Origin: Heterodontus francisci
Lineage: Eukaryota
Direction of reading: 5' to 3'
DNA length: 64,000 nucleotides
Assembly: GCF_036365525.1 (NCBI RefSeq)
Contig: NW_027140807.1
Coordinates: forward strand, 558,001 to 622,000
The notes under the pieces are model-generated. The model did no database searches and was not told where the DNA came from. It saw only the letters and a program-made list of their open reading frames with translations. How positions within the stretch are numbered: position 1 is the first letter of the stretch; the number at the start of each line of letters is the position of its first letter. The translations under genes were made by a program, and so were the position numbers. Below, one piece after another: positions 3,184-59,598 of this stretch.

Positions 3184-3259
3184 CCAACACTGTCAACTTG
3201 GTCCCATCGCCGAAGTAAGCTATGTCTTTTGCACGATGCTCCAAACTCAGTCATGAACA
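3184..3259 (-). other. TRBJ: TCR beta J segment (coding 3184-3231, KDIAYFGDGTKLTVL), weak 12-RSS
   Basis: FGDGT motif, GTAAG donor, CACGATG(3232-3238)-12bp-TCATGAACA (degenerate nonamer). Confidence 0.9.
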
Positions 3260-3574: not shown

Positions 3575-3654
3575 GGTTTTTGTACGGAGGTTGCATTGGA
3601 TTTTATCACCGTGTCCCTGCTGTTCCCACAGTGATAGACACTCACACAAAAAAT
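3575..3654 (-). other. TRBD: TCR beta D segment GGAACAGCAGGGA (3614-3626) with upstream 12-RSS and downstream 23-RSS
   Basis: + strand GGTTTTTGT(3575-3583)-23bp-CACCGTG(3607-3613), 13 nt, then CACAGTG(3627-3633)-12bp-ACAAAAAAT(3646-3654); 12/23 arrangement typical of TRB/TRD D segments. Confidence 0.95.
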
Positions 3655-6700: not shown

Positions 6701-9700
6701 GTTGGACAGGAGCAGGAGGAGGACATTCAGCCCCTCTCCAGTCTGTTACATAGGAACAGGAGGAGGACATTCAGCCCCTCTCCAGTCTGTTACACAGGAA
6801 GAGGAGGAAGACATTCAGCCCCTCTCGAGTCTGTTACACTGGAACAGGAGGAGGACATTCAGCCCCTCTGGAGCCTGTTCTACAGGAACAGGAGGAGGAC
6901 ATTCAGCCCCTCTCCAGTCTGTTAGACAGGAGCAGGAGGAGGACATTCAGCCCCTCTCCAGTCTGTTACATAGGAACAGGAGGAGGACATTCAGCCCCTC
7001 TCCAGTCTGTTACACAGGAAGCGGAGGAAGACATTCAGCCCCTCTCGAGTCTGTTACACTGGAACAGGAGGAGGACATTCAGCCACTCTCGAGTCTGTTA
7101 GACAGGAGCAGGAGGAGGACATTCAGCCCCTCTGGAGCCTGTTATACAGGAACAGGAAGAGGACATTCAGCACCTCTCCAGTCTGTTAGGCAGGAGCAGG
7201 AGGAGGACATTCAGCCCCTCTCCAGTCTGTTAGACAGGAGTAGGAGGAGGACATTCAGCCCCACTCGAGTCTGTTACACAGGAGCAGGAGGAGGACATTC
7301 AGCCCCTCTCGAGTCTGTTACATAGGAACAGGAGGAGGACATTCAGCCCCTCTACAGTCTGTTACACAGGAAGAGGAGGAGGACATTCAGCCACTCTCGA
7401 GTCTGTTAGACAGGAGCAGGAGGAGGACATTCAGCCCCTCTGGACCCTGTTGTACAGGCACAGGAGGAGGACATTCAGCCCCTCTCCAGTCTGTTGGACA
7501 GGAGCAGGAGGAGGACATTCAGCCCCTCTCCAGTCTGTTACATTGGATCAGGAGGAGGACATTCAGCCCCTCTCCAGTCTGTTACACGGGAAGAGGAGGA
7601 AGACATTCAGACCCTCTCCAGTCTGTTACACTGGAACAGGAGGAGGACATTCAGTCACTCTCCAGTCTGTAGACTGGAGCAGGAGGAGGACATTCAGCCC
7701 CTCTGGAGCCTGTTATACAGGAACAGGAGGAGGACATTCAGCCCCTCTCCAGTCTGTTAGACAGTAGCACGAGGAGGACATTCAGCCCCTCTCCAGTCTG
7801 TTACTCAGGAACAGGAGGAGGACATTCAGCCCCTCGCCAGTCTGTTACACAGCAACAGGAGGAGGACATTCAGCCCCTCTCCAGTCTATTACACAGGAAC
7901 AGGAGGAGGACATTCAGCCGCTCTCCAGTCTGTTACACAGGAACAGGATGAAGACATTCAGCACCTCGCCAGTCTGTTACACAGGAACACGAGGAGGACA
8001 TTCAGCCCCTCACCAGTCTGTTACACAGGAACAGGAGGAGGACATTCAGACCCTCTCCTGTCTGCTTCACAGGAACAGCTGGAGGACATTCAGCCCCTCT
8101 CCAGTCTGTTACACAGGAACAGGAGGAGGACATTCAGCCGCTCTCCAGTCTGTTACACAGGAACAGGAGGAAGACATTCAGCCCCTCGCCAGTCTGTTAC
8201 ACAGCAACACGAGGAGGACATTCAGCCCCTCACCAGTCTGTTACACAGGAACAGGAGGAGGTCATTCAGCCCCTCTCCTGTCTGCTTCACAGGAACAGCT
8301 GGAGGAGATTCAGCCCCTCTCCAGTCTGTTACAAAGGAACAGGAGGAGGACATTCAGTCCCTCTCCAGTCTGTTACACAGGAACAGGAGGAGGACATTCA
8401 GCCCCTCTCCAGTCTGCTACACAGGAACAGGAGGAGGACATTCAGCTGCTCTCCAGTCTGTTACACAGGAACAGGAGGAGGGCATTCAGACCCTCGCCAG
8501 TCTGTTACACAGCAACAGGAGGAGGACATTCAGCCCCTCTCCAGTCTATTACACAGGAACAGGAGGAGGACATTCAGCCGCTCTCCAGTCTGTTACACAG
8601 GAACGGTCGGAAGACATTCAGCCCCTCGCCAGTCTGTTACACAGGAACACGAGGAGGACATTCAGCCCCTCACTAGTCTGTTACACAGGAACAGGAGGAG
8701 GTCATTCAGCCCCTCTTCTGTCTGCTTCACAGGAACAGTTGGAGGAGATTCAGCCCCTCTCCAGTCTGTTACACAGGAACAGGAGGAGGACATTCAGCCC
8801 CTCTCCAGTCTGTTACACAGGAACAGGAGGAGGACATTCGGCCCCTCTCCAGTCTGTTACTCAGGAACAGGAGGAGGACATTCAGCCCCGCTCCAGTCTG
8901 TTCCACAGGAACAGGAGGAGGACATTCAGCCCCTCTCCAGTCTGTAACACAGGAACAGGAGGAGGACATTCAGCCCGTCTCCAGTCTGCTACACAGGAAC
9001 AGGAGGAGGACATTCAGCCCCTCTCCAGTATGTTACATATGAACAGGAGGAGGACATTCAGCCCCTCTCCAGTCTGCTACACAGGAACAGGAGGAGGACA
9101 TTCAGCTGCTCTCCAGTCTGTTACACAGGAACAGGAGGAGGGCATTCAGACCCTCGCCAGTCTGTTACACAGCAACAGGAGGAGGACATTCAGCCCCTCT
9201 CCAGTCTATTACACAGGAACAGGAGGAGGACATTCAGCCGCTCTCCAGTCTGTTACACAGGAACAGTAGGAAGACATTCAGCCCCTCGCCAGTCTGTTAC
9301 ACAGGAACACGAGGAGGACATTCAGCCCCTCACTAGTCTGTTACACAGGAACAGGAGGAGGTCATTCAGCCCCTCTTCTGTCTGCTTCACAGGAACAGCT
9401 GGAGGAGATTCAGCCCCTCTCCAGTCTGTTACACAGGAACAGGAGGAGGACATTCAGCCCCTCTCCAGTCTGTTACACAGGAACAGGAGGAGGACATTCA
9501 GCCCCTCTCCAGTCTGTTACTCAGGAACAGGAGGAGGACATTCAGCCCCTCTCCAGTCTGTTACACAGGAACAGGAGGAGGACATTCAGCCCCTCTCCAG
9601 TCTGTAACACAGGAACAGGAGGAGGACATTCAGCCCGTCTCCAGTCTGCTACACAGGAACAGGAGGAGGACATTCAGCCCCTCTCCAGAATGTTACATAT

Positions 9701-12700
9701 GAACAGGAGGAGGACATTCAGCCCCTCTCCAGTCTGAAACACAGGAACAGGAGGAGGACATTCAGCCCCTCTCCAGTCTGTTACATTTGAACAGGAGGGT
9801 AACATTCAGCCCCTCTCCTGTCTGCTACACGGGAACAGGAGGCGGACATTCAGCCCATCTCCAGTCTGTTACACAGGAACAGGAGGAGGACATTCAGCAC
9901 CTCTCTAGTCTGTTACACAGGAACAGGAGGAGGACATTCAGTCCCTCTCCAGCCTGTTACACAAAAACAGGAGGAGGACATTCAGCCCCTCTCCAGTCTG
10001 TTACACAGGAAGAGGAGGAAGACATTCAGCCCCTCTCGTGTTTGTTACACTGGAACAGGAGGAGGACATTCAGCCACTCTCGTGTCTGTTGGACAGGAGC
10101 AGGAGGAGGACATTCCGCCCCTCTGGAGCCTGTTATACAGGAACAGGAGGAGGACATTCAGCCCCTCTCCAGTCTGTTACATAGGAACAGGAGGAGGACA
10201 TTCAGCCCCTCTCCAGTCTGTTACACAGGAAGAGGAGGAAGACATTCAGCCCCTCTCGAGTCTGTTACACTGGAACAGGAGGAGGACATTCAGCCACTCT
10301 CGAGTCTGTTGGACAGGAGCAGGAGGAGGACATTCAGCCCCTCTCCAGTCTGTTACATAGGAACAGGAGGAGGACATTCAGCCCCTCTCCAGTCTGTTAC
10401 ACAGGAAGAGGAGGAAGACATTCAGCCCCTCTCGAGTCTGTTACACTGGAACAGGAGGAGGACATTCAGCCACTCTCGAGTCTGTTGGACAGGAGCAGGA
10501 GGAGGACATTCAGCCCCTCTGGAGCCTGTTCTACAGGAACAGGAGGAGGACATTCAGCCCCTCTCCAGTCTGTTAGACAGGAGCAGGAGGAGGACATTCA
10601 GCCCCTCTCCAGTCTGTTACATAGGAACAGGAGGAGGACATTCAGCCCCTCTCCAGTCTGTTACACAGGAAGCGGAGGAAGACATTCAGCCCCTCTCGAG
10701 TCTGTTACACTGGAACAGGAGGAGGACATTCAGCCACTCTCGAGTCTGTTAGACAGGAGCAGGAGGAGGACATTCAGCCCCTCTGCAGCCTGTTATACAG
10801 GAACAGGAAGAGGACATTCAGCACCTCTCCAGTCTGTTAGGCAGGAGCAGGAGGAGGACATTCAGCCCCTCTCCAGTCTGTTAGACAGGAGTAGGAGGAG
10901 GACATTCAGCCCCACTCGAGTCTGTTACACAGGAGCAGGAGGAGGACATTCAGCCCCTCTCGAGTCTGTTACATAGGAACAGGAGGAGGACATTCAGCCC
11001 CTCTCCAGTCTGTTACACAGGAAGAGGAGGAGGACATTCAGCCACTCTCGAGTCTGTTAGACAGGAGCAGGAGGAGGACATTCAGCCCCTCTGGACCCTG
11101 TTGTACAGGCACAGGAGGAGGACATTCAGCCCCTCTCCAGTCTGTTGGACAGGAGCAGGAGGAGGACATTCAGCCCCTCTCCAGTCTGTTACATTGGATC
11201 AGGAGGAGGACATTCAGCCCCTCTCCAGTCTGTTACACGGGAAGAGGAGGAAGACATTCAGACCCTCTCCAGTCTGTTACACGGGAAGAGGAGGAAGACA
11301 TTCAGACCCTCTCCAGTCTGTTACACTGGAACAGGAGGAGGACATTCAGTCACTCTCCAGTCTGTAGACTGGAGCAGGAGGAGGACATTCAGCCCCTCTG
11401 GAGCCTGTTATACAGGAACAGGAGGAGGACATTCAGCCCCTCTCCAGTCTGTTAGACAGTAGCACGAGGAGGACATTCAGCCCCTCTCCAGTCTGTTAGA
11501 CAGGAGCAGGAGGAGGACATTCAGCCCCACTCGAGTCTGTTACACAGGAGCAGGAGGAGGACATTCAAACCCTCACCGCTCTGTTAGACAGGAGCAGGAG
11601 TAGGACATTCGGCCCTTCTCCAGTCTGCTACACAGGAACAGGAGGAGGACATTCAGCCCCTCTCCAGTATGTTACATATGAACAGGAGGAGGACATTCAG
11701 CCCCTCTCCAGTCTGAAACACAGGAACAGGAGGAGGACATTCAGCCCCTCTCCATTCTGTTACATTTGAACAGGAGGTTAACATTCAGCCCCTCTCCTGT
11801 CTGCTATACAGGAACAGGAGGAGGACATTCAGCCCATCTCCAGTCTGTTACACAGGAACAGGAGGAGGACATTCAGCCCCTCTCTAGTCTGTTACACAGG
11901 AACAGGAGGAGGACATTCAGTCCCTCTCCAGTCTGTTACATAGGAACAGGAGGAGGACATTCAGCCCCTCTCCAGTCTGTTACACAGGAAGAGGAGGAAG
12001 ACATTCAGCCCCTCTCGTGTTTGTTACACTGGAACAGGAGGAGGACATTCAGCCAATCTCGAGTCTGTTGGACAGGAGCAGGAGGAGGACATTCAGAACC
12101 TCTGGAGCCTGTTATACAGGAGCAGGAGGAGGACATTCAGCCCCTCTCCAGTCTGTTACATTGGATCAGGAGGAGGACATTCAGCCCCTCTCCAGTCTGT
12201 TACACAGGAAGAGGAGGAAGACATTCAGCCCCTCTCGTGTTTGTTACACTGGAACAGGAGGAGGACATTCAGCCAATCTCGAGTCTGTTGGACAGGAGCA
12301 GGAGGAGGACATTCAGACCCTCTGGAGACTGTTATACAGGAACAGGAGGAGGACATTCAGCCCCTCTCCAGTCTGTTACACAGGAAGAGGAGGAAGACAT
12401 TCAGCCCCTCTCGAGTCTGTTACACTGGAACAGGAGGAGGACATTCAGCCACTCTCGAGTCTGTTGGACAGGAGCAGGAGGAGGACATTCAACCCCTCTG
12501 GAGCCTGTTCTACAGGAACAGGAGGAGGACATTCAGCCCCTCTCCAGTCTGTTAGACAGGAGCAGGAGGAGGACATTCAGCCCCTCTCCAGTCTGTTACA
12601 CAGGAACAGGAGGAAGACATTCAGCCCCTCTCGAGTCTGTTACACTGGAACAGGAGAAGGACATTCAGCCACTCTCGAGTCTGTTAGACAGGAGCAGGAG

Positions 12701-13765
12701 GAGGACATTCAGCCCCTCTGGAGCCTGTTACACAGGAACAGGAGGAGGACATTCAGCCCCTCTCCAGTCTGTTAGACAGGAGCAGGAGGAGGACATTCAG
12801 CCCCTCTCCAGTCTGTTGGACAGGAGCAGGAGGAGGACATTCAGCCCCACTCGAGTCTGTTACACAGGAGCAGGAGGAAGACATTCAGCCCCTCTCCAGT
12901 CTGTTAGACAGGAGCAGGAGGGGGACATTCAGCCCCTCTGGAGCCTGTTATACAGGAACAGGAGGAGGACATTCAGCCCCTCTCCATCTGTTGGACAGGA
13001 GCAGGAGGAGGTCATTCAGCCCCTCTCCAGTCTGTTACATAGAAACAGGAGGAGGACTTTCAGCCCCTCTCCAGGCTGTTACACAGGAAGAGGAGGAAGA
13101 CATTCTGCCCCTCTCCAGTCTGTTACACTGGAACAGGAGGAGGACATTCAGCCCCTCTGGAGCCTGTTATACAGGAACGGGAGGAGGACATTCAGCCCCT
13201 CTCCAGTCTGTTAGACAGTAGCAGGAGGAGGACATTCAGCCCCTCTCCTGTCTGTTAGACAGGAGCAGGAGGAGGACATTCAGCCCCACTCGAGTCTGTT
13301 ACTCAGGAGCAGGAGGAGGACATTCAAACCCTCTCCGCTCTGTTGGACAGGAGCAGGAGGAGGACATTCAGCCCCTCTCCAGTCTGTTACAGAGGAACAG
13401 GAGGAGGACATTCAGCCCCTCTCCAGTCTGTTACACAGGAACAGGAGGTGGACATTCAGCCCCTCTGGAGCCTGTTATACAGGAACAGGAGGAGGACAGT
13501 CAGCCCCTCTCCAGTCTGTTACACAGGAACAGGATTAGGACATTCAGCCCCTCTCCGGTCTGTTGCAAAGGAACAGGAGGCGGACATTCAGCCACTCTCC
13601 TGTCTGTTACACTGGAATAGGAGGAGGACACTCAGCCCCTCTCCAATCTTTTACACAGTAACAGGAGGAAGACATTCAGCCCCTCGAGAGCCTGTTACAC
13701 AGGAACAGGAGGAGGCACTTTAGCCCCTCTTGAACCTGTTGCACCGGAACAGGAGGAGGCCATTC
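3769..13765. repeat. 44-bp tandem satellite (consensus CAGGAACAGGAGGAGGACATTCAGCCCCTCTCCAGTCTGTTACA), ~225 units, running into an assembly gap
   Basis: Directly visible tandem repeat; ORF track shows 44-aa periodicity (3 units). Confidence 0.98.
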
Positions 13766-13928
13766 NNNNNNNNNNNNNNNNNNNNNNNNNNNNNNNNNNN
13801 NNNNNNNNNNNNNNNNNNNNNNNNNNNNNNNNNNNNNNNNNNNNNNNNNNNNNNNNNNNNNNNNNNNNNNNNNNNNNNNNNNNNNNNNNNNNNNNNNNNN
13901 NNNNNNNNNNNNNNNNNNNNNNNNNNNN
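13766..13928. other. Assembly gap (N run)
   Basis: Run of N. Confidence 1.
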
Positions 13929-15164: not shown

Positions 15165-15550
15165 AAATGCAGCACTCCCTTAGTACTGACCCTCTGACAG
15201 TGCAGTGCTCCCTCAGTAATGACCCTCTGACAGTGCAGTGCTCCCTCAGTAATGACCCTCTGACAGTGCAGCATTTCCTCAGTACTGATCCTCTGAAAGT
15301 GCAGTGCTCCCGCAGTACTGACCCTCCAACAGTGCAGCACTCCCACAGTACTGACCCTCTGACAGTGCAGCACTCCCTCAGTACTGACCCTCCAACAATG
15401 CAGCACTCCTTCAGTACTGACTCTCTGACAGTGCAGCACTCCCTCGGTACTGACCCTCCAACAGTGCAGCACTCCCTCTGTACTAACCCTCTGACAGTGC
15501 AGCACTCCCTCGGTACTGACCCTCCAACAGTGCAACACCCCCTCAGTACT
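15165..15550. repeat. 33-bp minisatellite (CACTCCCTCAGTACTGACCCTCTGACAGTGCAG), ~11 units, SINE-associated
   Basis: Visible tandem repeat; 11-aa periodic ORFs. Confidence 0.9.
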
Positions 15551-16249
15551 GAATTGACCAAGTTGGCTGCATTGGCGATCGATGGGCGGTAGGTGGTGAT
15601 ATTGCTCCACTAACCCTGATCGCTTCTTCATTTCTCGGCCGTTCCTTCCTCTGACAGCGACATCAGCTCTGCAATTCCCTCCCTAACCCTCTCCACCACC
15701 CTCTCCTCCAAACCGGACCGTTTTCGGGACGTTTTCTCTACGGACGCTGAAGTCGCTGTATAAATGCAAGTCACATTTGTGAACAGGAGGTCCAGGACTT
15801 GGAGCATGTCCTCCAGAAACTGATTCTGCCGGCAGTTTCGCTTTATGTTCCTTCTACGGGTAGACACGAACTAAACTGGTCACAGAAAAAGTAACTGGAA
15901 TTTGTCACGACCGGGATTTCGCGTTTTGTTGCTCCAATTTTCAGCACTTGCCTGTCGTCACTTGATGCAACTGAGTGGCACTGGGAGAACAGTTAAGTGA
16001 TAACTACATTGATGTGGACCAGGAGTCAGGTAGAAGGGGGTAAGTAGGGCAAATGTTTTCCTGTGGGACATTAGAGAACCAACAACAATCAGGTAGTTTC
16101 ATGGTCATAATTCATGTCACTGGTACTTTATCTCAATCAATTGAACTTCAACTCTTCTGAAGGCTGCAGTGGGGTTTGAACTCGCGACTACCAAAGCGCC
16201 AGCCCGGGCTGTTGGCTTACTGGTCCAGTAATATCACCACCAGTCTAAC

Positions 16250-17931: not shown

Positions 17932-17950
17932 TCGCGCCCTCTGGCGGCCG
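17932..17950 (-). promoter_or_regulatory. Near-consensus CTCF-binding motif between V cluster and D (CGGCCGCCAGAGGGCGCGA)
   Basis: Matches the CCASYAGRKGGCRS core (G at the A position) in locally CpG-rich, apparently non-repeat sequence; binding not demonstrated. Confidence 0.65.
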
Positions 17951-32029: not shown

Positions 32030-32652
32030 GATATGCCTGTCTGTCTATCTATATAGCTATCTATCTATCTATCACTGTAGCTATCTGTCTATCTTTCTCT
32101 CTATCTATCTTTCTGCATGGCTGTGTGTCTGTCTCTCTATCTGTGTCAGTTTGTCTCTCTATCTGTATGAATCCGTCTGTCTGTCTACCTACCTATCTTT
32201 TTGTCTGTCTGTCTTCATATTTACCTATTTGCATATCTGTCTGTCTATCTATCTATTTGACCATTTGCCTATCTATCTGTCTACCTATCTGTCTGTCTAT
32301 CAATCAATCTGTCTGTCAATCGATCTATCTGTCTGCCTAGCTGTCTACCCATCTGTCTTTCTATTTATCTGTCTGTAATCTATCTATCTAATGTCNNNNN
32401 NNNNNNNNNNNNNNNNNNNNNNNNNNNNNNNNNNNNNNNNNNNNNNNNNNNNNNNNNNNNNNNNNNNNNNNNNNNNNNNNNNNNNNNNNNNNNNNNNNNN
32501 NNNNNNNNNNNNNNNNNNNNNNNNNNNNNNNNNNNNNNNTGTCTATCGATCTATCTGTCTGTCTATCTATCTGCCATCTGCCTTTCTACCTTCCTAGCTA
32601 TCTATCTGCCTGTCTATCTGTCGATCTAATGTCTGCCTGTCTGCCTTCCTAC

Positions 32653-45545: not shown

Positions 45546-47054
45546 CTCTGGAGGGTGAAGGATCCGTGTGGTTTTAAATGAAATGACTGAGCACTTTTAT
45601 TGTAGAGTATCTCAAAGTTCTGGGAACTGACTGGAATTTACAGCTTCCGTCTCCATCATCTTCAACATTTTCCTAGGCGGAGCCAAGCTTTCTTTCTTTG
45701 TTCATGGGCTCCCCGAGGACTCGTCATTTCTGGGGAGGGACCAATGTTTGAGCCCCAGCTCATCGGTTTCTGGGCCTGCAGTTCTGTTTCATGTCTTTGA
45801 AAGTTGCAGAAAGGAAGGGAGTAAATGTGATGTAAACTATCTTCTGTGGTGGAGAGGTGATTAAATGGGCGGGTGTGTTGGTATCATCAATACCTTCAGT
45901 ACTCCCCTGATCATAACCACATTCATCCTGACACCATCCTCACACTCATCATTACCATCTGAGGACACATTACCACCCTCCTCCCGACCGCCATTTTCTG
46001 TGTCAGCCTCACCCTCAGCAGCCTCATAACCATGAAAAGATGCTCACTCCACCATCATTATCAAGCTTGTTCACTTCCAATTGTATCTGAATGTATTCAG
46101 TGATGGGATGTGTGCATTGCTGGGAGGGTCATTTCAGAAAAGCTGAGATGTTACAAGAGTAAATGTTCACTATCTTTCTTAAATATCCATCAGGACTCGG
46201 TAACAATGGAAGTGTTAAAGGTTAGACCAAGAGTGGGGGTGACAACTTAACTATTCCATAGATGCATTTTACATGAAGTGGGAAGATCATGGATGAAATG
46301 GGAAACATTTCAATGTTTTTTGGATTGAATGAGCAGTGGTGTGGTCCATCATCGCACCCCTAACCTTCTGGATTGGGCTCTGGGACTTTTGGTAACCTTG
46401 TCTTTTCCAATGAACAGCTTCTCCCACATCTCCACATAGCTGAAACCCCTCATGCCCGGTCACCTCCTTCTAAATCTCCTTTGCACCCTCTCCATCCTCC
46501 CGGCAATGTCATGTAAAGAAGTGGACACGCTACACCAGTTGAGGCCAAACCAGGCTTTTACTAAAGGGTTTAGCATCAATTTATTGCGTTTGTGTTGCAT
46601 TCAAAATTGTGTGCGTTAATTCTGCTTAATCAGAAAAAATAGTATGAAACATGCATTTCAGTCCGAAATTTTTGGTCGGTGGATTTGTTTTGACTTACCT
46701 GCAGTTTGTTGGCAAAGAAAGAACAAAGAAAAAAGAAAATTACAGCACAGGAACAGGCCCTTCGGCCCTCCAAGCCTGCGCCGATCCAGATCCTCTACCT
46801 AAACATGTCGCCTATTTTCTAAGGGTCTGTATCTCTTTGCTTCCTGCCCATTCATGTATCTGTCTAGATACATCTTAAAAGACGCTATCGTGTTCGCATC
46901 TACCACCTCCGCTGGCAACGCGTTCCAGGCACTGAAGTGTCAGCCTTTTTATTGGCTCCAGTCTGTGGAGTGGCATCTTCTAACTCAGAGAGGAGAGTTT
47001 TACCCACTCAGATAGCACGTTGAGTCTTGAGTACCTCATCTCCTGATTCTACAA

Positions 47055-47590
47055 AGCTTTTCCACCATCTCCAAGGCACAAGTCAGAAGTGTGATGGAAT
47101 GCTCTCCACTTACCGGGATGAGTGCAGCTCCAACAACACTCAAGAAGCTCGACACCATCCAGAACAAAACAGCCCGCTTGATTGGCCCCCCATCTACAAA
47201 CATTCACTCCCTCCACCACCGACACACAGTGGCAGCAGTGTGTACCATCTACAAGATGCACTGCAGCAACTCCCAAAGGCTCCTTCGCCAACACCTTCCA
47301 AACCCTCGACCTCTACCACCGAGAAGGACAAGGACAGCAGATGCATGGGAACACCACCACCTGCAAGTTCCCCTTCAAGTCACACACCATCCTCACTTGG
47401 AACTATATCGCCGTTCCTTCACTGTCGCTGGGTCAAAATCCTGGAACTCTCTTCCTTACGGGACTGTGGTTGTAACTACCCGACATGGACTGCAGTGGTT
47501 CAAGAAGGCAGCTCACCACCACCTTCTCAAGGGCAATTTAGGATGGATAGCAGATGCTGGCCCGGTCAGCGATGCACACATCCCATCAAA
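47055..47590 (+). mobile_element. LINE 3' fragment (CR1/L2-clade)
   Basis: ORF MECSPLTGMSAAPTTLKKLDTIQNKTARLI...SKSWNSLP...FKKAAHHHLL. Confidence 0.85.
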
Positions 47591-47988
47591 TAATTTTTTA
47601 AAATATGTAAATGACAGAAACTGTTTCTATAGGCAGAAGGCAACCCAGAGACATTGATTAAATATAACTGGCAGATGAATTAATGGGGAGAGGGGGGGAG
47701 AAGTGATGATTTATTTAAGCAGCGAGTTGTTATGATGTGGCGAGCACTGTCTGAAAGGGTGTTGGAAGCAGTTTGAACAAGAACGTTCAAAAGGGAATGG
47801 ATTGTACACGTGAATGGAAACAATGTGCATGGCTATGGGGAAGTAGCGGGGGGGGGGGGTGGGGGGAAGAGCAATAACTGGACAGTTCTTTCAAATAAGC
47901 CAGTACGGGGAAGATGGGCCGAATGGTCTCCTTCTCTGCTGTTAACCAAGATGATTCCATGACCTGGTTGCAGAAATTGAGCAGTCAG

Positions 47989-48836
47989 TCTACTGCTGCC
48001 CCCTGCCGGTCGAAGATAAGCACAGAGATTCAATCCACTGCTGCCCCCTGCCGGTGGATGATGAGCACTGAGATTCAATCCACTGCTGCCCCCTGCTGGT
48101 GGAAGATGAGCACTGAGATTCAATCTACTGCTGCCCCCTGCCGGTGGAAGATCAGCACCGAGATTCAATCCACTGCTGCCCCCTGCCGGTGGATGGTGAG
48201 CACTGAATTCAATCTACTGCTGCCCCCTGCCGGTGGAAGATGAGCACTGAGATTCAATCCACTGCTGCCCCCTGTCAGTGGAAGATGAGCACTGAGATTC
48301 AATCTACTGCTGCCCCCTGCCGGTGGAAGATGAGCACTGAGATTCAATCTACTGCTGCCCCCTGCCGGTGGAAGATGAGCACTGAGATTCAATCCACTGC
48401 TGCCCCCTGCCAGTGGAAGATGAGCACTGAGATTCAATCTACTGCTGCCCCCTCCCGGTGGAAGATGAGCGCAGAGATTCAATCTACTGCTGCCCCCTGC
48501 TGGGGGAAGATGAGCACTGAGATTCAATCTACTGCTGCCCCCTGCCGGTGGAAGATGAGCACTGAGATTCAATCCACTGCTGCCCCCTGCCAGTGGAAGA
48601 TGAGCACTGAGATTCAATCCACTGCTGCCCCCTGCCGGTGGAAGATGAGCACTGAGATTCAATCTACTGCTGCCCCCTGCCGGGGGAAGATGAGCATTGA
48701 GATTTAATCTACTGCTGCCTCCTGCCGGTGGAGGATGAGCACTGAGATTTAATCTACTGCTGCCCCCTGCCGGTGGATGATGAGCACTGAGATTTAATCT
48801 ACTGCTGCCCCCTGCCGGTGGAAGATGAGCACTGAA
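47989..48836 (-). repeat. 19 x 45-bp tandem array, each unit carrying a CTCF-consensus motif (minus strand CCACCGGCAGGGGGCAGCA), directly downstream of the V7 RSS
   Basis: Unit TCTACTGCTGCCCCCTGCCGGTGGAAGATGAGCACTGAGATTCAA counted 19 times; repeat is certain, CTCF call is by motif match. Confidence 0.9.
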
Positions 48837-48855
48837 CTCCCGTTCATCCGCTGCA

Positions 48856-49726
48856 GGTTTTTGCAGCTGCGGATCCGCTTTCTCAAACACTGTGCGATAC
48901 TGCAAGCGCAGAAATAGACAGCGGTGTGAGATGGAGCGGCGTCTCTCAGTGCCAAAGTAAACAGTGTATCGCTGGCTCTGTCTGCCTTAAATGACTCGGA
49001 CGTGTAATTGGTAACAGACCCTTCTGTAGCAGAATAGAACAGAGCTTCCAGTGCCCTGTCTGGATGTTGTCTGTACAAGTACATATAGGAATTGGCAGTA
49101 TTGGTCAGCGTGCATCTGAGTGTTGTCGACTCTCCTGCCGCAATCGATAGGATAGAGGGTGACTGTTCCACATAGGAGGAGAGTATTCCTGTGGAATGGA
49201 ACATCGATTAGATTATTATTTCAGTCAATAATGGATTGGAGCAGGAGCTGCATTGCAAGAAAGAAAGGGCTTACATTAATATAGCGCCGTTCAGGACCTC
49301 AGGGCATCAGAAAGTGCTTTGCAACAAATGCAGTTACTCCGTCAGTACTGCCTATTCGACAGTGCAGCACTCCCTCAGTACTGCCTCTGCGACTGTGCAG
49401 CAGTCCCTCAGTACTGCCTCTGCGACAGTGCAGAACTCACTCAGTACTGCCTCTGCGACAGTGCAGCACTCCCTCAGTACTGCCTCTGTGACAGTGCAGC
49501 ACTCCCTCAGTACTGCCTCTGCGACAGTGCAGCACTCCCTCAGTCCTGACATGTGGTTTGTCAGCCTTGACTTTGAGCTGAAGTGCTCTGGAGTGAGACT
49601 CTGACACAGGAGTGTTCCGGACAGAATCACCGCTGACATTGCAATACATTATTCTACAGTTTCAGACTTTGACTGACGTGGGAAGAATGCAGCCATCAAG
49701 ATTAGACAGAGAACTTCAAGCAACAT
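48856..49726 (-). CDS. TRBV: TRBV gene V7 (CACS family), open frame but conserved Trp replaced by Leu: leader 49678-49726, V exon 48895-49188, 23-RSS
   Basis: YMYLYRQ versus LMYWYRQ in paralogs; ends YFCACSI; CACAGTG-23bp-GCAAAAACC. Confidence 0.9.
49330..49545. repeat. 33-bp minisatellite in V7 intron (also 54985-55195 and 57185-57362)
   Basis: CACTCCCTCAGTACTGCCTCTGCGACAGTGCAG tandem units. Confidence 0.9.
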
Positions 49727-51221
49727 GATTTCTTCATTCGATACTAACTCGATGTGTGAACGTGTGGAGTTTTCAACAACACACTTGCAGGCGGTTTCTA
49801 TATTGTATCCAATTAAATACCCAGCATCCGGTTGTCATTGTGATTGGCAGTCACTTACTGCGACACTCTGCTCCACCCCACTACTTTGCATAGCAATGTT
49901 GTAGAATGATACAACACAGGAGGATAGGGGGAGATTGAATAGAGATGTTCACATTTCAGAAAGGGATTTGATAGAGTAGAATTCAGGGAAGCAACCCTCT
50001 ATACCCAGAGAGTGTGCCCATCCCTTATTGCCCCTGAGAAGGTGGTGGTGAACCATCTTCGGGAATACCTGCTGGGCCATGTCAGAGGGCAGTTAACAGT
50101 CAACCACATTGCTGTGGGTCTGCAGTCACATATAGGCCAGACCGGGTAGGAATGGCGGATTTCCTTCCCTGAAGGTAATCAATGAAGACGTTGGGTTTTT
50201 AAGACACTCCATGTTCAGGATTACTCATACTTTCCATGACAGATTTTTATTTATTTAATTAATTGAATTTAAATTGCATTTCTGCCAGTGTGGGAATTGA
50301 ACTCAAGTCTGGGGATCATTAGTCCAGGCCTCTGGATTACTAGCCCAGTAACATAACTGCTCTGCTGCCGAACCTCCATGGTGAATGGGAGTTAAAGGGT
50401 TAAATTGTTCACTTGTCTGAACTGCTAGTTTCTTTGAAGAACACATCAAATGTGACTCGAGTCTGAGGTGAAAGTGGGTAAAGAGTTTTCAGCAGCTTCT
50501 GAACTCGCTGTCAGGAGGCAGGTGTCCCAGAGATGAAGTTATCTGGAGAGGGGTCTCACTTTGAACAGTGTGAAACAGCGCTCAGATGGTTAATGGTTCT
50601 GCGCTGAGTTAGTCCCTGTGCATTGGGGGGTTGTTCGCGTCTGTGTAGTGAAGGCTAGAGGGAGATTAACCAGACTGGTATCAGGGATGAGGGACTTCAG
50701 TTACTGTGGAGAGACTGGAGAAGCTGGGGGTTTCTGCCCTTAGAGCAGAGAAGGTTAATTAGATGTGATACAGATATTGAAGATCATAGAGGATTTTGAT
50801 AGATAATTGATGATAAACCACATCTTCTACTGGTCAATATATAGAAAATCTATGAAAAGATGGTCATTCATTACATTACTGCAGTATGTTTAATTAGTTC
50901 ATACAAAGTGTAATTACCTAAAGATAGATTTAGATAGATAGAGAGACAGAGAGATAGATAACCAGGTAAAGAGATAGATAGATAGAGAGACAGAGAGATA
51001 AACAATCAGGTGGACAGATAGATATGAACAGAAAGCTTCAATCTACTGCTGCCCCCTGCCAGTTGAAGTTGAGCACTGAACTCCCGTTCATCCGCTGCAG
51101 GTTTTTGCAGCTGCTGATCCGCTTTCTCAAACACTGTGCGATACTACAAGCGCAGAAATAGACAGCGGTGTGAGATGGAGCTGCGTCTCTCAGTGCCAAA
51201 GTAAACGAGAGAGACTCACGG

Positions 51222-51814: not shown

Positions 51815-54541
51815 GTGGGTGAGCTTGCAGCATGGGTTGGTACCTGGGATCCTGATGTTGTGGCCATTTCGGAGACATGGGTAGAGCAGGGGCAGGAATG
51901 GATGTTGCAGGTTCCGGGATTTAGATGTTTCAGTAAGAACAGAGAAGAGGGTAAAAGAGGGGGGGGGGGTGTGGCATTGTTAATCAAGGAAAGTATTACA
52001 GCGGCAGAAAGGACGTTTGAGGACTCGTCTACTGAGGTAGTATGGGCCGAGGTTAGAAACAGGAGAGGAGAGGTCACCCTGTTGGGAGTTTTCTATAGAC
52101 CTCCGAATAGTTCCAGAGATGTAGAGGAAAGGATAGCGAAGATGATTCTCGACAGGAGCGAGAGTAACAGGGTAGTGGTTATGGGGGACTTTAACTTTCC
52201 AAATATTGACTGGAAATACTATAGTTCGAGTACTTTAGATGGGTCTGTTTTTGTCCAGTGTGTGCAGGAGGGTTTTCTGACACAGTATGTGGGCAGGCCA
52301 ACCAGGGGCGATGCCACATTGGATTTGGTACTGGGTAATGAACCCGGCCAGGTGTTCGATTTAGATGTAGGTGAGCACTTTGGCGATAGTGATCACAATT
52401 CTGTTAGGTTTACCTTAGCGATGGGCAGGGACAGGTATATACCGCAGGGCAAGAATTATAGCTGGGGGAAAGGAAATTATGACGCGATTAGGCAAGATTT
52501 AGGATGTGTAGGATGGGGAAGGAAACTGCAGGGGATGGGCACAAACGAAATGTGGAGCTTATTCAAGGAGCAGCTACTGCGTGTCCTTGATAAGTATGTA
52601 CCTGTCAGGCAGGGAGGAAGTTGTCGAGCGAGGGAGCCGTGGTTTACTAAAGAAGTTGAAGCGCGTGTCAAGAGGAAGAGGGCGGCTTATGTTAGGATGA
52701 GACGTGAAGGCTCAGTTAGGGCGCTTGAGAGTTACAAGCTAGCCAGGAAGGATCTAAAGGGAGGGCTAAGAAGAGCAAGGAGAGGACACGAGAAGTCATT
52801 GGCGGATAGGATCAAAGAAAACCCTAAGGCTTTCTATAGGTATATCAGGAATAAACGAATGATAAGAGTTAGAACAGGGCCAATCAAGGATAGTAGTGGG
52901 AAGTTGTGTGCGGAATCAGAGGAGATAGGGGAAGCGTTAAATGAATATTTTTCGTCAGTATTTACAGTAGAGAAAGAAAATGTTGCCGAGGAGATTACTG
53001 AGATACAGCCTACTAGGCTAGATGGGATTGAGATTCACAAGGAGGAGGTGTTAGCAATTTTGGAAAGAGTGAAAATAGATAAGTCCCCTGGGCCAGATGG
53101 GATTTATCCTAGGATTCTCTGGGAAGCCAGGGAGGAGATTGCAGAGCCGTTGCTGTTGATCTTTAAGTCGTCATTGTCGACAGGAGTAGTGCCAGAGGAC
53201 TGGAGGATAGCAAATGTTGTCCCCTTGTTCAAGAAGGGGAGTAGAGACAGCCCTGGTAATTATAGACCTGTGAGCCTTACTTCGGTTGTGGGTAAAATGT
53301 TGGAAAAGGTTATAAGAGACAGGATTTATAATCATCTTGAAAAGAATAAGTTCATTTGCGATAGTCAGCACGGTTTTGTGAAAGGTAGGTCGTGCCTCAC
53401 AAACCTTATTGAGTTTTTCGAGAAGGTGACCAAACAGGTGGATGAGGGTAAAGCCGTGGATGTGGTGTATATGGATTTCAGTAAGGCGTTTGATAAGGTT
53501 CCCCACGGTAGGCTATTGCAGAAAATACGGAAGTATGGGGTTGAAGGTGATTTAGAGCTTTGGATCAGAAATTGGCTAGCTGAAAGAAGACAGAGGGTGG
53601 TGGTTGATGGCAAATGTTCATCCTGGAGTTTAGTTACTAGTGGTGTACCGCAAGGTTCTGTTTTGGGGCCACTGCTGTTTGTCATTTTTATAAACGACCT
53701 GGATGAGGGTGTAGAAGGGTGGGTTAGTAAATTTGCGGATGACACGAAGGTCGGTGGAGTTGTGGATAGTGTCGAAGGGTGTTGTAGGGTACAGAGGGAC
53801 ATAGATAGGCTGCAGAGCTGGGCTGAGAGATGGCAAATGGAGTTTAATGCGGAGAAGTGTGAGGTGATTCACTTTGGAAGGAGTAACAGCAATGCAGAGT
53901 ACTGGGCTAATGGGAAGATTCTTGGTAGTGTAGATGAGCAGAGAGATCTTGGTATCCAGGTACATAAATCCCTGAAAGTTGCTACCCAGGTTAATAGGGC
54001 TGTTAAGAAGGCATATGGTGTGTTAGCCTTTATTAGTAGGGGGATCGAGTTTCAGAGCCACGGGGTCATGATGCAGCTGTACAAAACTCTGGTGAGGCCG
54101 CACCTGGAGTATTGCGTGCAGTTCTGGTCACCGCATTATAGGAAGGATGTCGAAGCTTTGGAAAGGGTGCAGAGGAGATTTACTAGGATGTTGCCTGGTA
54201 TGGAAGGAAGGTCTTACGAGGAAAGGCTGAGGGACTTGGGGTTGTTTTCGTTAGAGAGAAGGAGGAGGAGAGGTGACTTAATAGAGACATACAAGATAAT
54301 CAGAGGGTTAGATAGGGTGGATAGTGAGAGTCTTTTTCCTCGGATGAGGATGGCAAACACGAGGGGACATAGCTTTAAGTTGAGGGGTGAAAGATATAGG
54401 ACAGATGTCAGAGGTAGTTTCTTTACGCAGAGAGTAGTAGGGGCGTGGAACGCCCTGCCTGCAACAGTAGTAGACTCGCCAACTTTAAGGGCATTTAAGT
54501 GGTCATTGGATAGACATATGGATGTAAATGGAATAGTGTAG
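51815..54541 (+). CDS. CR1 ORF2: APE endonuclease plus reverse transcriptase (frame stays open upstream of 51815: CVYFNARS)
   Basis: ISETW, MGDFN, SDH, KSPGPDG, YRPVSLTS, DFSKAFD, GVPQGSVLGP, FADD motifs; 908 codons with no stop. Confidence 0.96.
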   Translation: MGELAAWVGTWDPDVVAISETWVEQGQEWMLQVPGFRCFSKNREEGKRGGGGVALLIKESITAAERTFEDSSTEVVWAEVRNRRGEVTLLGVFYRPPNSSRDVEERIAKMILDRSESNRVVVMGDFNFPNIDWKYYSSSTLDGSVFVQCVQEGFLTQYVGRPTRGDATLDLVLGNEPGQVFDLDVGEHFGDSDHNSVRFTLAMGRDRYIPQGKNYSWGKGNYDAIRQDLGCVGWGRKLQGMGTNEMWSLFKEQLLRVLDKYVPVRQGGSCRAREPWFTKEVEARVKRKRAAYVRMRREGSVRALESYKLARKDLKGGLRRARRGHEKSLADRIKENPKAFYRYIRNKRMIRVRTGPIKDSSGKLCAESEEIGEALNEYFSSVFTVEKENVAEEITEIQPTRLDGIEIHKEEVLAILERVKIDKSPGPDGIYPRILWEAREEIAEPLLLIFKSSLSTGVVPEDWRIANVVPLFKKGSRDSPGNYRPVSLTSVVGKMLEKVIRDRIYNHLEKNKFICDSQHGFVKGRSCLTNLIEFFEKVTKQVDEGKAVDVVYMDFSKAFDKVPHGRLLQKIRKYGVEGDLELWIRNWLAERRQRVVVDGKCSSWSLVTSGVPQGSVLGPLLFVIFINDLDEGVEGWVSKFADDTKVGGVVDSVEGCCRVQRDIDRLQSWAERWQMEFNAEKCEVIHFGRSNSNAEYWANGKILGSVDEQRDLGIQVHKSLKVATQVNRAVKKAYGVLAFISRGIEFQSHGVMMQLYKTLVRPHLEYCVQFWSPHYRKDVEALERVQRRFTRMLPGMEGRSYEERLRDLGLFSLERRRRRGDLIETYKIIRGLDRVDSESLFPRMRMANTRGHSFKLRGERYRTDVRGSFFTQRVVGAWNALPATVVDSPTLRAFKWSLDRHMDVNGIV

Positions 54542-56706
54542 GTCAGATGATCGGCGCAACATCGAGGGCCGAAGGGCCTGTACTGCGCTGTAATATTCTA
54601 ATTCTAATTCTAATTCTATTGCTGGCTCTGTCTGCCTTAAATGACTCGGACGTGTAATTGGTGACAGACCCTGTTCCAGCAGAATAGAACAGAGCTTCCA
54701 GTGCCCTGTCTGGTTGTTGTCTGTACCAGTACATTAATGTATAGCCAGTATTCTTCAGCGTGCATCTGAGTGTTGTCGACTCTCCTGCGGAAAGCGATAG
54801 GATAGAGGGAGACTGTTCCACATAGGAGGCGAGTATTCCTGTGGGACGGAACATCGATTAGATTATTATTTCAGTCAATAATGGATTGGAGCAGAGGCTG
54901 CATTACAAGAAAGAGAGGGCTTACATTAATATATCGCCGTTCAGGACCTCAGGGCAACAGAAAGGGCTTTGCAACCAATGTAGTTACTCCCTCATTACTG
55001 CCTCTGCGACAGTGCGGCACTCCCTCAGTACTGCCTCTGCAACAGTGCAGCACTCCCTCAGTACTGCCTCTGCGACAGTGCAGCACTCCCTCAGTACTGC
55101 CTCTGCGACAGTGCAGTATTCCCTCAGTACTGCCTCTGCGACAGTGCAGCACACCCTCAGTACTGCCTCTGCGACAGTCCAGCACTCCCTCAGTCCTGAC
55201 ACCTGGGGTGTTAGTTTTGCCTTTGAGCTCAAGTGTTCTGGAGTGAGACTCTGACACAGCAGTGTTACGGAACAGAATCACCGCTGACATTACAATACAT
55301 TATTCGACACAGTTTCTGACTTTGACTTACGTGGGAAGAGTGCAGCCATCAAGATTAGACTGAGAACTTCATGCAACATGATTTCTTCATTCGATACTAA
55401 CTCGATGTGTGAACGTGTGGAGTTTTCAACAACACACTTGCAGGCAGTTTCTATATTGTATCCAATTAAATACCCAGCATCCGGTTGTCATTGTGATTGG
55501 CAGTCACTTACTGCGACACTCTGCTCCACCCCATTACTTTATGTAGCAATGCTGTAGAATGATACAACACAAGGGGATAGGGGGAGATTGAATAGAGGTG
55601 TTCACATTTCAGAAAGGGATTTGATAGAGTAGAATTCAGGGAAACAACCCTCTGTACCCGGAGAGTGTGCCCATCCCTTATTGCCCTTGAGTTGGTGGTG
55701 GTGAACCATCTTCGGGAATGCCTGCTGGGCAGTTAATAGTCAACAACATTGCTGTTGGTCTGGAGGCACATATAGGCCAGACTGGGTAAGAACAGCATAT
55801 TTCACTATGTTCACTATGGAGAAGGATGATGTAGGTGTAGATATCAGGGAGGGGGGTTGTGATATACTTGAACATATTTGCTTTTAAAGGGAGGAGTATT
55901 AGCTGTTTTAGAAGACTTAAAAGTGGATAAGACCGCAGCCCGGATGAGACATATCCCAGGCTGTTATATGAGGCAAGGGAGGAGATTTCAGGGCCTCTGA
56001 CACAAATTTTCAATTCCCCTCTGGCCACAGGAGTGGTCTCAGAGGACTGGAGGATAGCGAATGTGGTACCATTATTCTAGAAGGACACTTGTGCTCTTCT
56101 GAACTCGCTGTCAGGAGGCAGGTGTCCCAGAGATGAAGTTATCTGGAGAGGGATCTCGCCTTTGAACAGTGTGAAACAGCGCTCAGATGGTTAAGGGTTC
56201 CGAGCTGAGTGAGTTCCTGTTCATTGGGGGTTTGTTTGCCTCTGTGTAGTGAAGGTTAGAGGGAGATTAACAAGACTGGTACCAGGGATGTGGGAGTTCA
56301 ATTACTGTGGAGAGACTGGAGAAGCTGGGGGTTTCTCTCCTGAGAGCAGAGAAGGTTAATGGTAGATGTGATAGAGATATTGAAGATCATAGAGGATTTT
56401 GATAGATAATTGATGACAAATCACATCTTCTACTGGTCAATATATAGAAAATCGATGAAAAGATGGTCATTCATTACATTACTGCAGTATGTTTAATTAG
56501 TTCATACAAACTGTAATTACCTAAAGATAGAGTTAGATAGATAGAGAGACAGAGAGATAGATAACCAGGTAAAGAGATAGATAGATAGATAGAGAGACAG
56601 AGAGATAAACAATCAGGTGGACAGATAGATATGAACAATAAGCTTCAATCTACTGCTGCCCCCTGCCAGTGGAAGGTGAGCACTGAACTCCCGTTCATCC
56701 GCTGCA

Positions 56707-57547
56707 GGTTTTTGCAGCTGCTGATCCGCTTTCTCAAACACTGTGCGATACTGCAAGCGCAGAAATAGACAGCGGTGTGAGATGGAGCGGCGTCTCTCAG
56801 TGCCAAAGTAAACAGTGTATCGCTGGCTCTGTCTGCCTTAAATGACTCGGACGTGTAATTGGTGACAGACCCTGTTCCAGCAGAATAGAACAGAGCTTCC
56901 AGTGCCCTGTCCGGTTGTTGTCTGTACCAGTACATTAATGTATAGCCAGTATTCTTCAGCGTGCATCTGAGTGCTGTCGACTCTCCGGCAGAAATCGATA
57001 GGATAGAGGGTGACTGTTCCACATCGGAGGCGAGTATTCCTGTGGGACAGAACATCGATTAGATTATTATTTCAGTCAATAATGGATTGGAGCAGGGGCT
57101 GCAGTACAAGAAAGAGAGGGCTTACATTAATATATCGCCGTTCAGGACCTCAGGGCATCAGAAAGGGCTCTGCAACCAATGTAGTTACTCCCTCAGTACT
57201 GCCTCTGCGACAGTGCGGCACTCCCTCAGTACTGCCTCTGCAACAGTGCAGCACTCCCTCAGTACTGCCTCTGTGACAGTGCTGCACTCCCTCAGTACTG
57301 CCTCTGCGACAGTGCAGCACACCCTCAGTACTGCCTCTGTGACAGTGCAGCACTCCCACAGCCCTGACACCTGGGGTGTTAGTTTTGACTTTGAGCTCAA
57401 GTGTTCTGGCGTGAGACTCTGACACAGCAGTGTTATGGAGCAGAATCACCGCTGACATTACAATACATTATTCGACACAGTTTCTGACTTTGACTTACGT
57501 GGGAAGAGTGCAGCCATCAAGATTAGACAGAGAACTTCATGCAACAT
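56707..57547 (-). CDS. TRBV: TRBV gene V9 (CACS family), potentially functional: leader 57499-57547, V exon 56746-57039, 23-RSS
   Basis: Open V domain WYRQ...YFCACSI; CACAGTG-23bp-GCAAAAACC. Confidence 0.94.
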
Positions 57548-59598
57548 GATTTCTTCATTCGATACTAACTCGATGTGTGAACGTGTGGAGTTTTCAACAA
57601 CACACTTGCAGGCAGTTTCTATATTGTATCCAATTAAATACCCAGCATCCGGTTGTCATTGTGATTGGCAGTCACTTACTGCGACACTCTGCTCCACCCC
57701 ATTACTTTACGTAGCAATGTTGTAGAATGATACAACACAAGGGGATAGGGGGAGATTGAATAGAGGTGTTCACATTTCAGAAAGGGATTTGATAGAGTAG
57801 AATTCAGGGAAACAACCCTCTGTTCCCGGAGAGTGTGCCCATCCCTTATTGCCCTTGAGAAGGTGGTGGTGAACCATCTTCGGGAATGCCTGCTGGGCAG
57901 TTAATAGTCAACAACATTGCTGTTGGTCTGGAGGCACATGTAGGCCAGACCGGGAAAGAACGGCATATTTCACTACGTTCACTATGGAGAAGGATGATGT
58001 AGGTGTAGATATCAGGGAGGGGGGTTGTGATATACTTGAACATATTTGCTTTTAAAGGGAGGAGTATTAGCTGTTTTAGAAGACTTAAAAGTGGATAAGA
58101 CCGCAGCCCGGATGAGACATATCCCAGGCTGTTATGTGAGGCAAGGGAGGAGATTTCAGGGCCTCTGACACAAATTTTCAATTCCCCTCTGGCCACAGGA
58201 GTGGTCTCAGAGGACTGGAGGACAGCGAATGTGGTACCATTATTCTAGAAGGACACTTGTGCTCTTCTGAACTCGCTGTCAGGAGGCAGGTGTCCCAGAG
58301 ATGAAGTTATCTGGAGAGGGATCTCGCCTTTGAACAGTGTGAGACAGCGCTCAGATGGTTAAGGGTATCGAGCTGAGTTAGTTCCTGTTCATTGATGGGT
58401 TGTTCGCCTCTGTGTAGTGAAGGTTAGAGGGAGATTAACAAGACTGGTACCAGGGATGAGGGAGTTCAATTACTTTGGAGAGACTGGAGAAGCTGGGGGT
58501 TTGTCTCCTGAGAGCAGAGAAGTTTAATGGTCGATGTAATACAGATATTGAAGATGATAAAAGATTTTGATAGATAATTGATGACAAACCACATCATCTA
58601 CTGGTCAATGTATAGAAAATCCCGGAAATGATGGTCATTCATTATATTAGTGCAGCATGTTTAATTAGTTCATACAAAGTGTAATCACCTAAAGATAGAG
58701 TTGAATAGATAGAGAGACAGAGAGATAGATCACCAGGTAGAGAGATAGATTGGTATCGAGAGAGGTAGAGAAATAGAGAGTTGGAAGGAAAGTCAGACAG
58801 GTAGAGAAATAGCGAGCTACATGGAGAGACAGTCACTGCCCCTGTAAAAGACAGGAATGTTAATTCGCATTCTACCATTTTACGCCAGCTTTGCAGCCAG
58901 TGGTAGAGTGGGGAATAGAGAGAGAGGGAGCGAGAGAGATGGAGAGAGTGGGATGGAGAGAGAGGGATGGAGACAGAGGGATGGTTAGAGAGGAATGGAG
59001 AGAGAGGGATGGAGAGAGAGGGATGGAGCGAGAGGGATGGAGAGAGGGAGCGACAGAAAGTTATTGATAAGTCACGAACTCATTGAAGGGCGGAGTGTTT
59101 TCGAGGTGATGAATGTTCTCCTTGTGTTCCCAGGTCACTTAAACTTTGTTCCAGACTCTGATGTTTATCATGGTCCAACAGCGCACTCTGCTGTCCCTTT
59201 GGAGAAAGAAAACGCAGTGAAATAAAACCACACCGTATCTATCTATCTGTCTAGCTGACTGTCTGTCTGTCTTTCTGTTTTTATCTGATCTTCATTTCAG
59301 ATATTAAAATCTTTAATAATCTCCCTTAGACCGCTTAAAGTTTACTCTTGTCTTCTCCTTTCTGGAGAAATAATCCCCCGATGTTCAAACTTTCTTGATA
59401 ACTTTAACCTCTGTGTTCTGATATCATTCCTGTAAAGTCTATTTCACAATTCCCCTGTGTTTCAATATCTAACCACTCAATTTCTATTTAAATCCGCCCT
59501 GTCTTCTTGTGAAAAACATGTTCCCAATGATAAAAACACCCAACAGGACGCAGCACCGCCTGGTTTTATCTGAAACAGGTATTTCCTGCTGCCTTTGG

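Follow-up and report, generated by a model that had tools for sequence, protein, structure and literature searches.

The DNA analysed here (the window) is a stretch of 64,000 nucleotides from Heterodontus francisci (contig NW_027140807.1, positions 558,001 to 622,000), and the arrangement of V, D and J elements in it is that of a TCR-beta (or delta) locus. Twelve V segments, all on the minus strand, were found in the window, and the recombination signal (RSS) was mapped for 11 of them. A TRB-type D segment (GGAACAGCAGGGA; 3614–3626, minus strand), located by RSS scanning and from the sequence, is flanked by a 5′ 12-RSS and a 3′ 23-RSS, and J-like open reading frames (FGxGTKLTVLGK) lie below position 3250 on the same strand. 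A word search returned one catshark V-like protein, P0001 of Scyliorhinus torazame, with 59% identity.

The V segment of main concern, V7, combines an open frame and a V-set domain with a canonical RSS and an in-frame leader splice. Its leader exon (49678–49726, minus strand; MLLEVLCLILMAAFFP-), read from the sequence, is in frame with the V exon across a GT..AG leader intron (49189–49677, minus strand), with the splice acceptor at 49189/49188. The V exon (48895–49188, minus strand), whose open frame ends in ...YFCACSIA, was used alone as the query in the Pfam and structure searches; it gave a Pfam V-set match (3.3e-14), and its matches among solved structures include many TCR beta chains. The adjoining 23-RSS (48856–48894, minus strand), identified by the RSS scan and from the sequence, consists of a CACAGTG heptamer at 48894, a 23-nt spacer and the nonamer GCAAAAACC ending at 48856.

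The locus contains several minisatellites, and Tandem Repeats Finder (TRF) reported periods of 44, 33, 51 and 37 bp in addition to the array described below. The 44-bp repeat (227 copies, ~10 kb, 3769–13765) starts on the upstream side of the D segment, ~115 bp from its 5′ 12-RSS, and runs up to an assembly gap (N run 13766–13928); a second N run in the window is located at 32396–32539. This repeat was considered as a second CTCF array beside D and was rejected, because its unit is without a CTCF motif by position weight matrix (PWM). The 33-bp minisatellite is present in the leader introns of V7 (49336–49548, TRF), V8 (54986–55198) and V9 (57187–57361) and also stands alone at 15168–15552; its words are extremely high-copy and common to contigs of other organisms, and it is probably part of a widespread repeat.

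Behind the V7 RSS, on the side of D and J, a 45-bp minisatellite extends over 47985–48835 (minus strand), for which TRF gave a period of 45, 18.9 copies and 93% matches with no indels. Cutting in register yielded 19 head-to-tail units, whose length falls within the 10–100 bp of minisatellite units and which show the variant-unit pattern of such repeats. The array sets in 20 bp past the V7 nonamer, and its first 19-mer starts at +35, so the description in the earlier note of 19 head-to-tail 45-bp units about 20 bp beyond the nonamer was borne out by TRF, the RSS scan and the unit register. In-register comparison, PWM scoring and IUPAC matching placed a CTCF-type core (CCGGCAGGGGGCAG) with a partial upstream motif in the repeating unit. 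At the same time, the units are less uniform than the earlier wording implied: the 19-mer CCACCGGCAGGGGGCAGCA, attributed to each of them, is exact in 10/19, and 8/19 have other variants, together with the single unit (1/19 by string count) that reads CCACCAGCAGGGGGCAGCA, exactly as had been noted. The upstream string CTCAGTGCT, also claimed for every unit, is exact in 13/19 and inexact in the remainder. The 13-mer CAGGGGGCAGCAG occurs 19 times in the window, always on the minus strand, 17 times in the array and once each in the flanks of V8 and V9. Fifteen distinct unit variants were distinguished, with identical units in the centre and more diverged ones at the edges, which is the usual picture of unequal exchange.

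The origin of the array can be read from V8 and V9, two paralogs that belong to a ~2.2-kb tandem module. Alignments placed one homologous unit behind V8 (RSS 51138) and one behind V9 (RSS 56745), at the offset from the nonamer seen for the V7 array, in agreement with the earlier note. The V8 unit is located at 51038–51082 (minus strand; core CAACTGGCAGGGGGCAGCA) and the V9 unit at 56645–56689 (minus strand; core CCACTGGCAGGGGGCAGCA), and both are weak (10.4 and 10.35 bits by PWM, respectively); in each flank the single unit is followed by a degenerate, truncated second one. Both cores read CTGG, and this C>T change at a near-invariant C is the reason for scores as low as ~10.4 bits. Since the flanks of V8 and V9 share the single unit, it belongs to the RSS flank of the V7–V9 subfamily and was multiplied in V7; the minisatellite-built origin proposed earlier, i.e., growth from a unit present once in the paralogs, thus agrees with the alignments. 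Below the array, where the V7 flank passes into repeated elements, it lacks homology to the flank of V8/V9, which makes V7 the D-proximal edge of the duplicated block. Very high-copy cross-species repeats are located just past the far end of the array (47001–47606 and 47910–48010), one of them with an end of the ...GGGATGGGCAATAAATGCTGGCC... type.

The paralogous modules have their own histories. V8 is interrupted by a LINE with an intact 908-aa reverse-transcriptase ORF (51815–54541, plus strand), which leaves a 3′ V piece with the RSS at ~51138–51220 and a 5′ piece at 54543–54854, and a fourth copy of the V7–V9 module (57418–58775, 95.8% identical to 55250–56607) has no V, RSS or 45-bp unit at its end. 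V9 is intact despite its crippled single motif, which argues that a strong site is not needed to keep the V frame open. The introns of V7 and V9 differ by 9.5%, or about 4.7% per lineage, and the units of the array diverge from their consensus by 4.4% (38/855 cells); the array is therefore not very young, and the two ages are alike. In the 104 bp of RSS flank and first unit, V7 differs from V9 at 4 positions, and once the RSS is left out the contrast with the intron is not significant by a rough Poisson estimate.

The strength of the CTCF-type motif was estimated with a hand-entered copy of the JASPAR matrix MA0139.1, whose consensus TGGCCACCAGGGGGCGCTA and column sums are as expected. A typical array unit scored 18.7 bits (p about 3e-7), and 16/19 units are strong (15–22 bits, p 2e-8 to 3e-6), the three weak ones being two CTGG variants at 10.3 bits and one CTGACAG variant at 7 bits. 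The core of the unit is in register with the CTCF core, and the fit that the earlier note had proposed is thus supported by strong scores. The IUPAC core CCASYAGRKGGCRS, with at most one mismatch, was matched 17 times in the window, where shuffles predict 0.91 matches and not one of 100 shuffles reached 17; inside the array, 14 units match at this threshold, 2 of them exactly. Outside the array, a single equally strong site was found in the window (17932–17950, minus strand, 20 bits). This lone motif (CGGCCGCCAGAGGGCGCGA) has V1, the D-proximal V, on one side and the D-J cluster on the other; it points the same way as the array and is a candidate V/D-J boundary site. Additionally, weaker CTCF-like motifs (12–13.6 bits) are present in the duplicated V5/V6 module, at 39003–39021/43588–43606 and 39816–39834/44401–44419 (minus strand, the array direction), ~565 bp and ~1.4 kb behind the RSS.

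The partial agreement with the upstream ZF9-11 motif claimed earlier held less well: TCTCAGTGCT matches the consensus CTGCAGTTCC at 5/10 positions, and this requires a 9-bp spacer rather than the usual 8-bp one, with which the match falls to 3/10. Note that this upstream motif is optional, being present in 13–15% of CTCF sites, and that its spacer length is reported to vary.

The array units depart from the CTCF consensus in one regular way, with G in place of A at core position 3, so that the first triplet is CCG, a known natural methylation-sensitive variant. In the CTCF core, the cytosines at positions 2 and 12 are followed by G or A, and these are the two positions where methylation governs binding (PMC10484683). 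The CpG of the CCGG block, which the earlier note had pointed out as methylatable, does lie at core position 2, and CCGG is retained in 14/19 units. At the same time, the core CpG is changed more often than the rest of the unit (5/38 variant cells vs 33/817 elsewhere, a 3.3-fold excess, P 0.02), which hints at some germline methylation, and such methylation would block binding at position 2. A close match with a proven site is provided by the chicken HS4 probe CCCCCGCTAGGGGGCAGCAGCGAG, whose CTCF binding was demonstrated by EMSA and was lost on mutation of the core (PMC12885311). The shark unit CCACCGGCAGGGGGCAGCAGTAGA has CCxCCG and the block AGGGGGCAGCAG in common with this probe, and the two cores are nearly identical.

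The orientation of the units toward D and J, as previously described, was confirmed: all of them are on the minus strand, like V, D and J, and D-J is located at lower coordinates. Because the units are copies of each other, their common orientation counts as one independent observation. According to the convergent rule, the N-terminus of CTCF would face cohesin arriving from the D-J side; no convergent partner site was found in the window. Among the 11 V segments with a mapped RSS, a motif of at least 8 bits within 150 bp of the RSS was found only for V7–V9. The array therefore has the position of an RSS-associated V-gene CTCF-binding element (CBE), beginning no more than 100 bp from the V RSS, on the D-J side, and oriented to D-J.

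Public reads were compared with the stretch 46900–49900 in four runs, all consisting of short contigs. No contig spans the array, and its length rests on the assembly. An assembly artefact, i.e., an incorrect copy number or an array misplaced from a paralogous V, is considered very improbable, even though no public contig bridges the array, the larger 44-bp array of the same window ends in an N run, and the contigs of the same-species run X1 over the V exon are V9-like at the diagnostic sites. Set against this, the array consists of 15 distinct unit variants in a fixed order with no N beside it, its first unit joins the RSS flank without a break, in just the way seen in V8 and V9, and the unit words were found in reads of the species in every bin of the array, with a summed depth of 60–1100 in X1. 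The flank at 47001–47606 and the 33-bp intron array reached a depth of 10^5–10^6 in the same contigs. Origin of the array from a dispersed transposable element (SINE B2-type) was considered and rejected, because the array is low-copy compared with the flanking repeats and its unit is present in the window only behind V7–V9. In the two runs from other organisms (X7 and X15), array depth was zero; however, the V exon was barely covered too, so these runs say nothing on conservation. In the RNA-type run X5, from the X1 sample, the depth on the V exon and leader was about 100-fold that on the array, and the contigs of this run contain the leader splice joint 49187>49677. The mapped V contigs have V9-like bases at the diagnostic positions 49077, 49093 and 49719, so expression is established at the level of the family and not for V7.

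The pattern of variation among the units bears on whether the core has been maintained. Variant cells amounted to 6/323 at non-CpG PWM positions and 27/494 outside the PWM (Fisher P 0.01), and to 0/114 at the high-information non-CpG positions. However, Fisher tests on cells (P 0.005–0.01) count inherited variants repeatedly, as the cells are not independent, and a fairer test was obtained by redistributing the 22 variant types among positions at random. At least 16 strong units were then kept with a probability of 0.03 when the CpG changes stayed in place and of 0.30 when every change could move; the permutations with fixed CpG changes gave P = 0.03–0.09 overall. Selection on the core within the array was accordingly rejected as a claim, with a permutation P of 0.03–0.3 despite the significant Fisher test. 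The copy number, too, bears no sign of being selected and is most likely a product of neutral drift.

A rival reading is that the array is a neutral minisatellite without CTCF occupancy, in which the motif is a chance likeness or a dead site, the DNA is methylated and packed into nucleosomes in lymphocytes, and recombination is unaffected. This possibility is a substantial one, if somewhat doubtful. The lack of clear core constraint in the permutation test and the excess of change at the core CpG speak for it, and so do the loss of the strong motif in V8 and V9, with V9 still intact, the abundance of minisatellites in the locus, including the 10-kb array next to D, and the greater divergence of edge units than of central ones, as in drifting arrays. 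A G-rich core of the GGGCAG type may itself favour expansion, which is to be counted on the same side. On the other hand, a 19-bit match exactly at the RSS flank and facing D-J is unlikely to arise by chance when 0.91 core matches are expected per window, and the CpG has been kept in 14/19 units and the strong motif in 16/19 despite an age like that of the V7/V9 split (4.4% vs ~4.7%).

A further rival is that the protein bound to the array is not CTCF but, for instance, a different zinc-finger protein or a factor of the meiotic hotspot type, or that the array acts through DNA structure. The part of the unit that resembles the upstream motif (CTCAGTGCT) and the GCAGCAG tail are indeed also well kept, and the upstream CTCF motif itself fits at 5/10 positions only. 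Nevertheless, we regard this explanation as improbable: the block that is kept best falls on the CTCF positions of high information, where 0/114 non-CpG cells are variant, and no alternative motif was identified. An Rfam search found no RNA family at the array, and a coding repeat was rejected, since the array ORFs are mechanical and the Pfam hits on them are artefacts of the repetition, in that no single stretch passes by itself.

For an array of this position, motif strength, orientation and single-unit origin, CTCF binding is likely, judging from the motif. The strong, same-orientation cores in 16/19 units, together with a spacing of 45 bp that can accommodate one ~35 bp CTCF footprint in each unit, lead us to infer that several CTCF molecules are bound where the single CpG of the unit is unmethylated. 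The reading placed first, to which we assign an even chance, is that the minisatellite arose from an RSS-flanking CTCF-type site, binds several CTCF molecules if its CpG is unmethylated, and acts as a direction-specific barrier to cohesin. Slippage or unequal exchange would have expanded the CTCF-type site in the RSS flank of one TRBV subfamily into the array behind V7, and the site would have stayed single and decayed behind V8 and V9. With the N-terminal side of CTCF facing the D-J recombination centre, the V7 array could form a multi-site barrier to cohesin extrusion coming from D-J. Such a barrier would keep the V7 RSS close to the centre and make V8 and the segments past it harder to reach by scanning, like the single proximal VH CBEs of the mouse, and both stalling and an effect on V use are expected consequences of binding rather than observations. 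Note that if cohesin stalls first at the far end of the 850-bp array, the stall point would lie up to ~870 bp from the RSS that is to be held.

A broader proposal would be that RSS-adjacent CTCF sites are ancient in the antigen-receptor loci of jawed vertebrates, and that a shark TRBV subfamily has turned such a site into a copy-number-variable super-anchor, in which the number of units (one weak unit in V8 and V9, 19 in V7) and CpG methylation set cohesin stalling, V joining and partition of the V cluster; this is put forward as a speculative and rather unlikely extension. If CTCF does bind, the shark TCR-beta locus would provide closely related V genes whose RSS-adjacent CTCF sites form a natural dose series, in which the effect of CBE number and strength on V usage and scanning barriers would be directly measurable. 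Moreover, the control of V(D)J recombination by loop extrusion, so far demonstrated in the mouse, would be pushed back to the base of the jawed vertebrates. Without CTCF binding, the array would simply add to the minisatellites of a locus already rich in repeats.

Several known systems resemble the array in part. The chicken beta-globin 5′HS4 (FII) and H19-type sites are like the shark unit in the CpG at core positions 2–3 and the CCG triplet, and the HS4 block AGGGGGCAGCAG is identical; however, they occur singly, in insulators or imprinting control regions, and are not minisatellites. In the DXZ4 and Firre macrosatellites and in the HRNR VNTR, as in the shark array, how many CTCF motifs there are follows from the number of repeat copies. 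Whether CTCF binds DXZ4, whose units are kilobase-sized, depends on the state of its chromatin. In the case of the human HRNR VNTR, it has been conjectured that additional units bring more CTCF sites and alter folding (PMC10234305). Unlike the shark array, DXZ4 is a macrosatellite of large size and HRNR a coding repeat, and neither adjoins a recombination signal. Tandem same-direction CTCF sites of the protocadherin and beta-globin clusters are described as stronger insulators (PMC7087399). The likeness is that several sites of the same direction add up to a stronger boundary, and the difference is that the sites in these clusters are taken to be separate, non-repetitive elements. In a cartilaginous fish, the little skate, CTCF motifs are oriented into TADs, so that an orientation code operates at TAD boundaries (PMC10115646).

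The earlier note knew of no description of such an arrangement in a TCR locus. This stands for sharks, since no paper on CTCF in a shark TCR locus was found among open papers and preprints, and needs qualification for the mouse, in which the TCR-beta locus has two CTCF-bound sites near RSSs. Of the known kinds, the V-gene CBE next to the RSS in mouse Igh comes closest, and the precedent invoked in the earlier note, namely, proximal VH CBEs near the RSS that raise V use and impede further scanning, is confirmed by the literature. In mouse Igh, the proximal VH CBEs are located within 100 bp of the RSS; those directly downstream of a V promote its use and block further RAG scanning, and every VH CBE is oriented toward D (Ba et al. 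preprint). The shark array resembles sites of the VH81X-CBE type and the RSS-near Tcrb sites in that it lies less than 100 bp from a V 23-RSS, on the D-J side, and faces D-J. It differs from the mouse CBEs in that 19 putative sites follow each other in tandem across 850 bp where the mouse has a single one, in its occurrence in only one V subfamily of the window, and in belonging to TCR-beta of a cartilaginous fish. What is new, compared with these systems, is the multiplication of an RSS-adjacent V-gene CBE-type site into a minisatellite beside the RSS of a TCR V gene.
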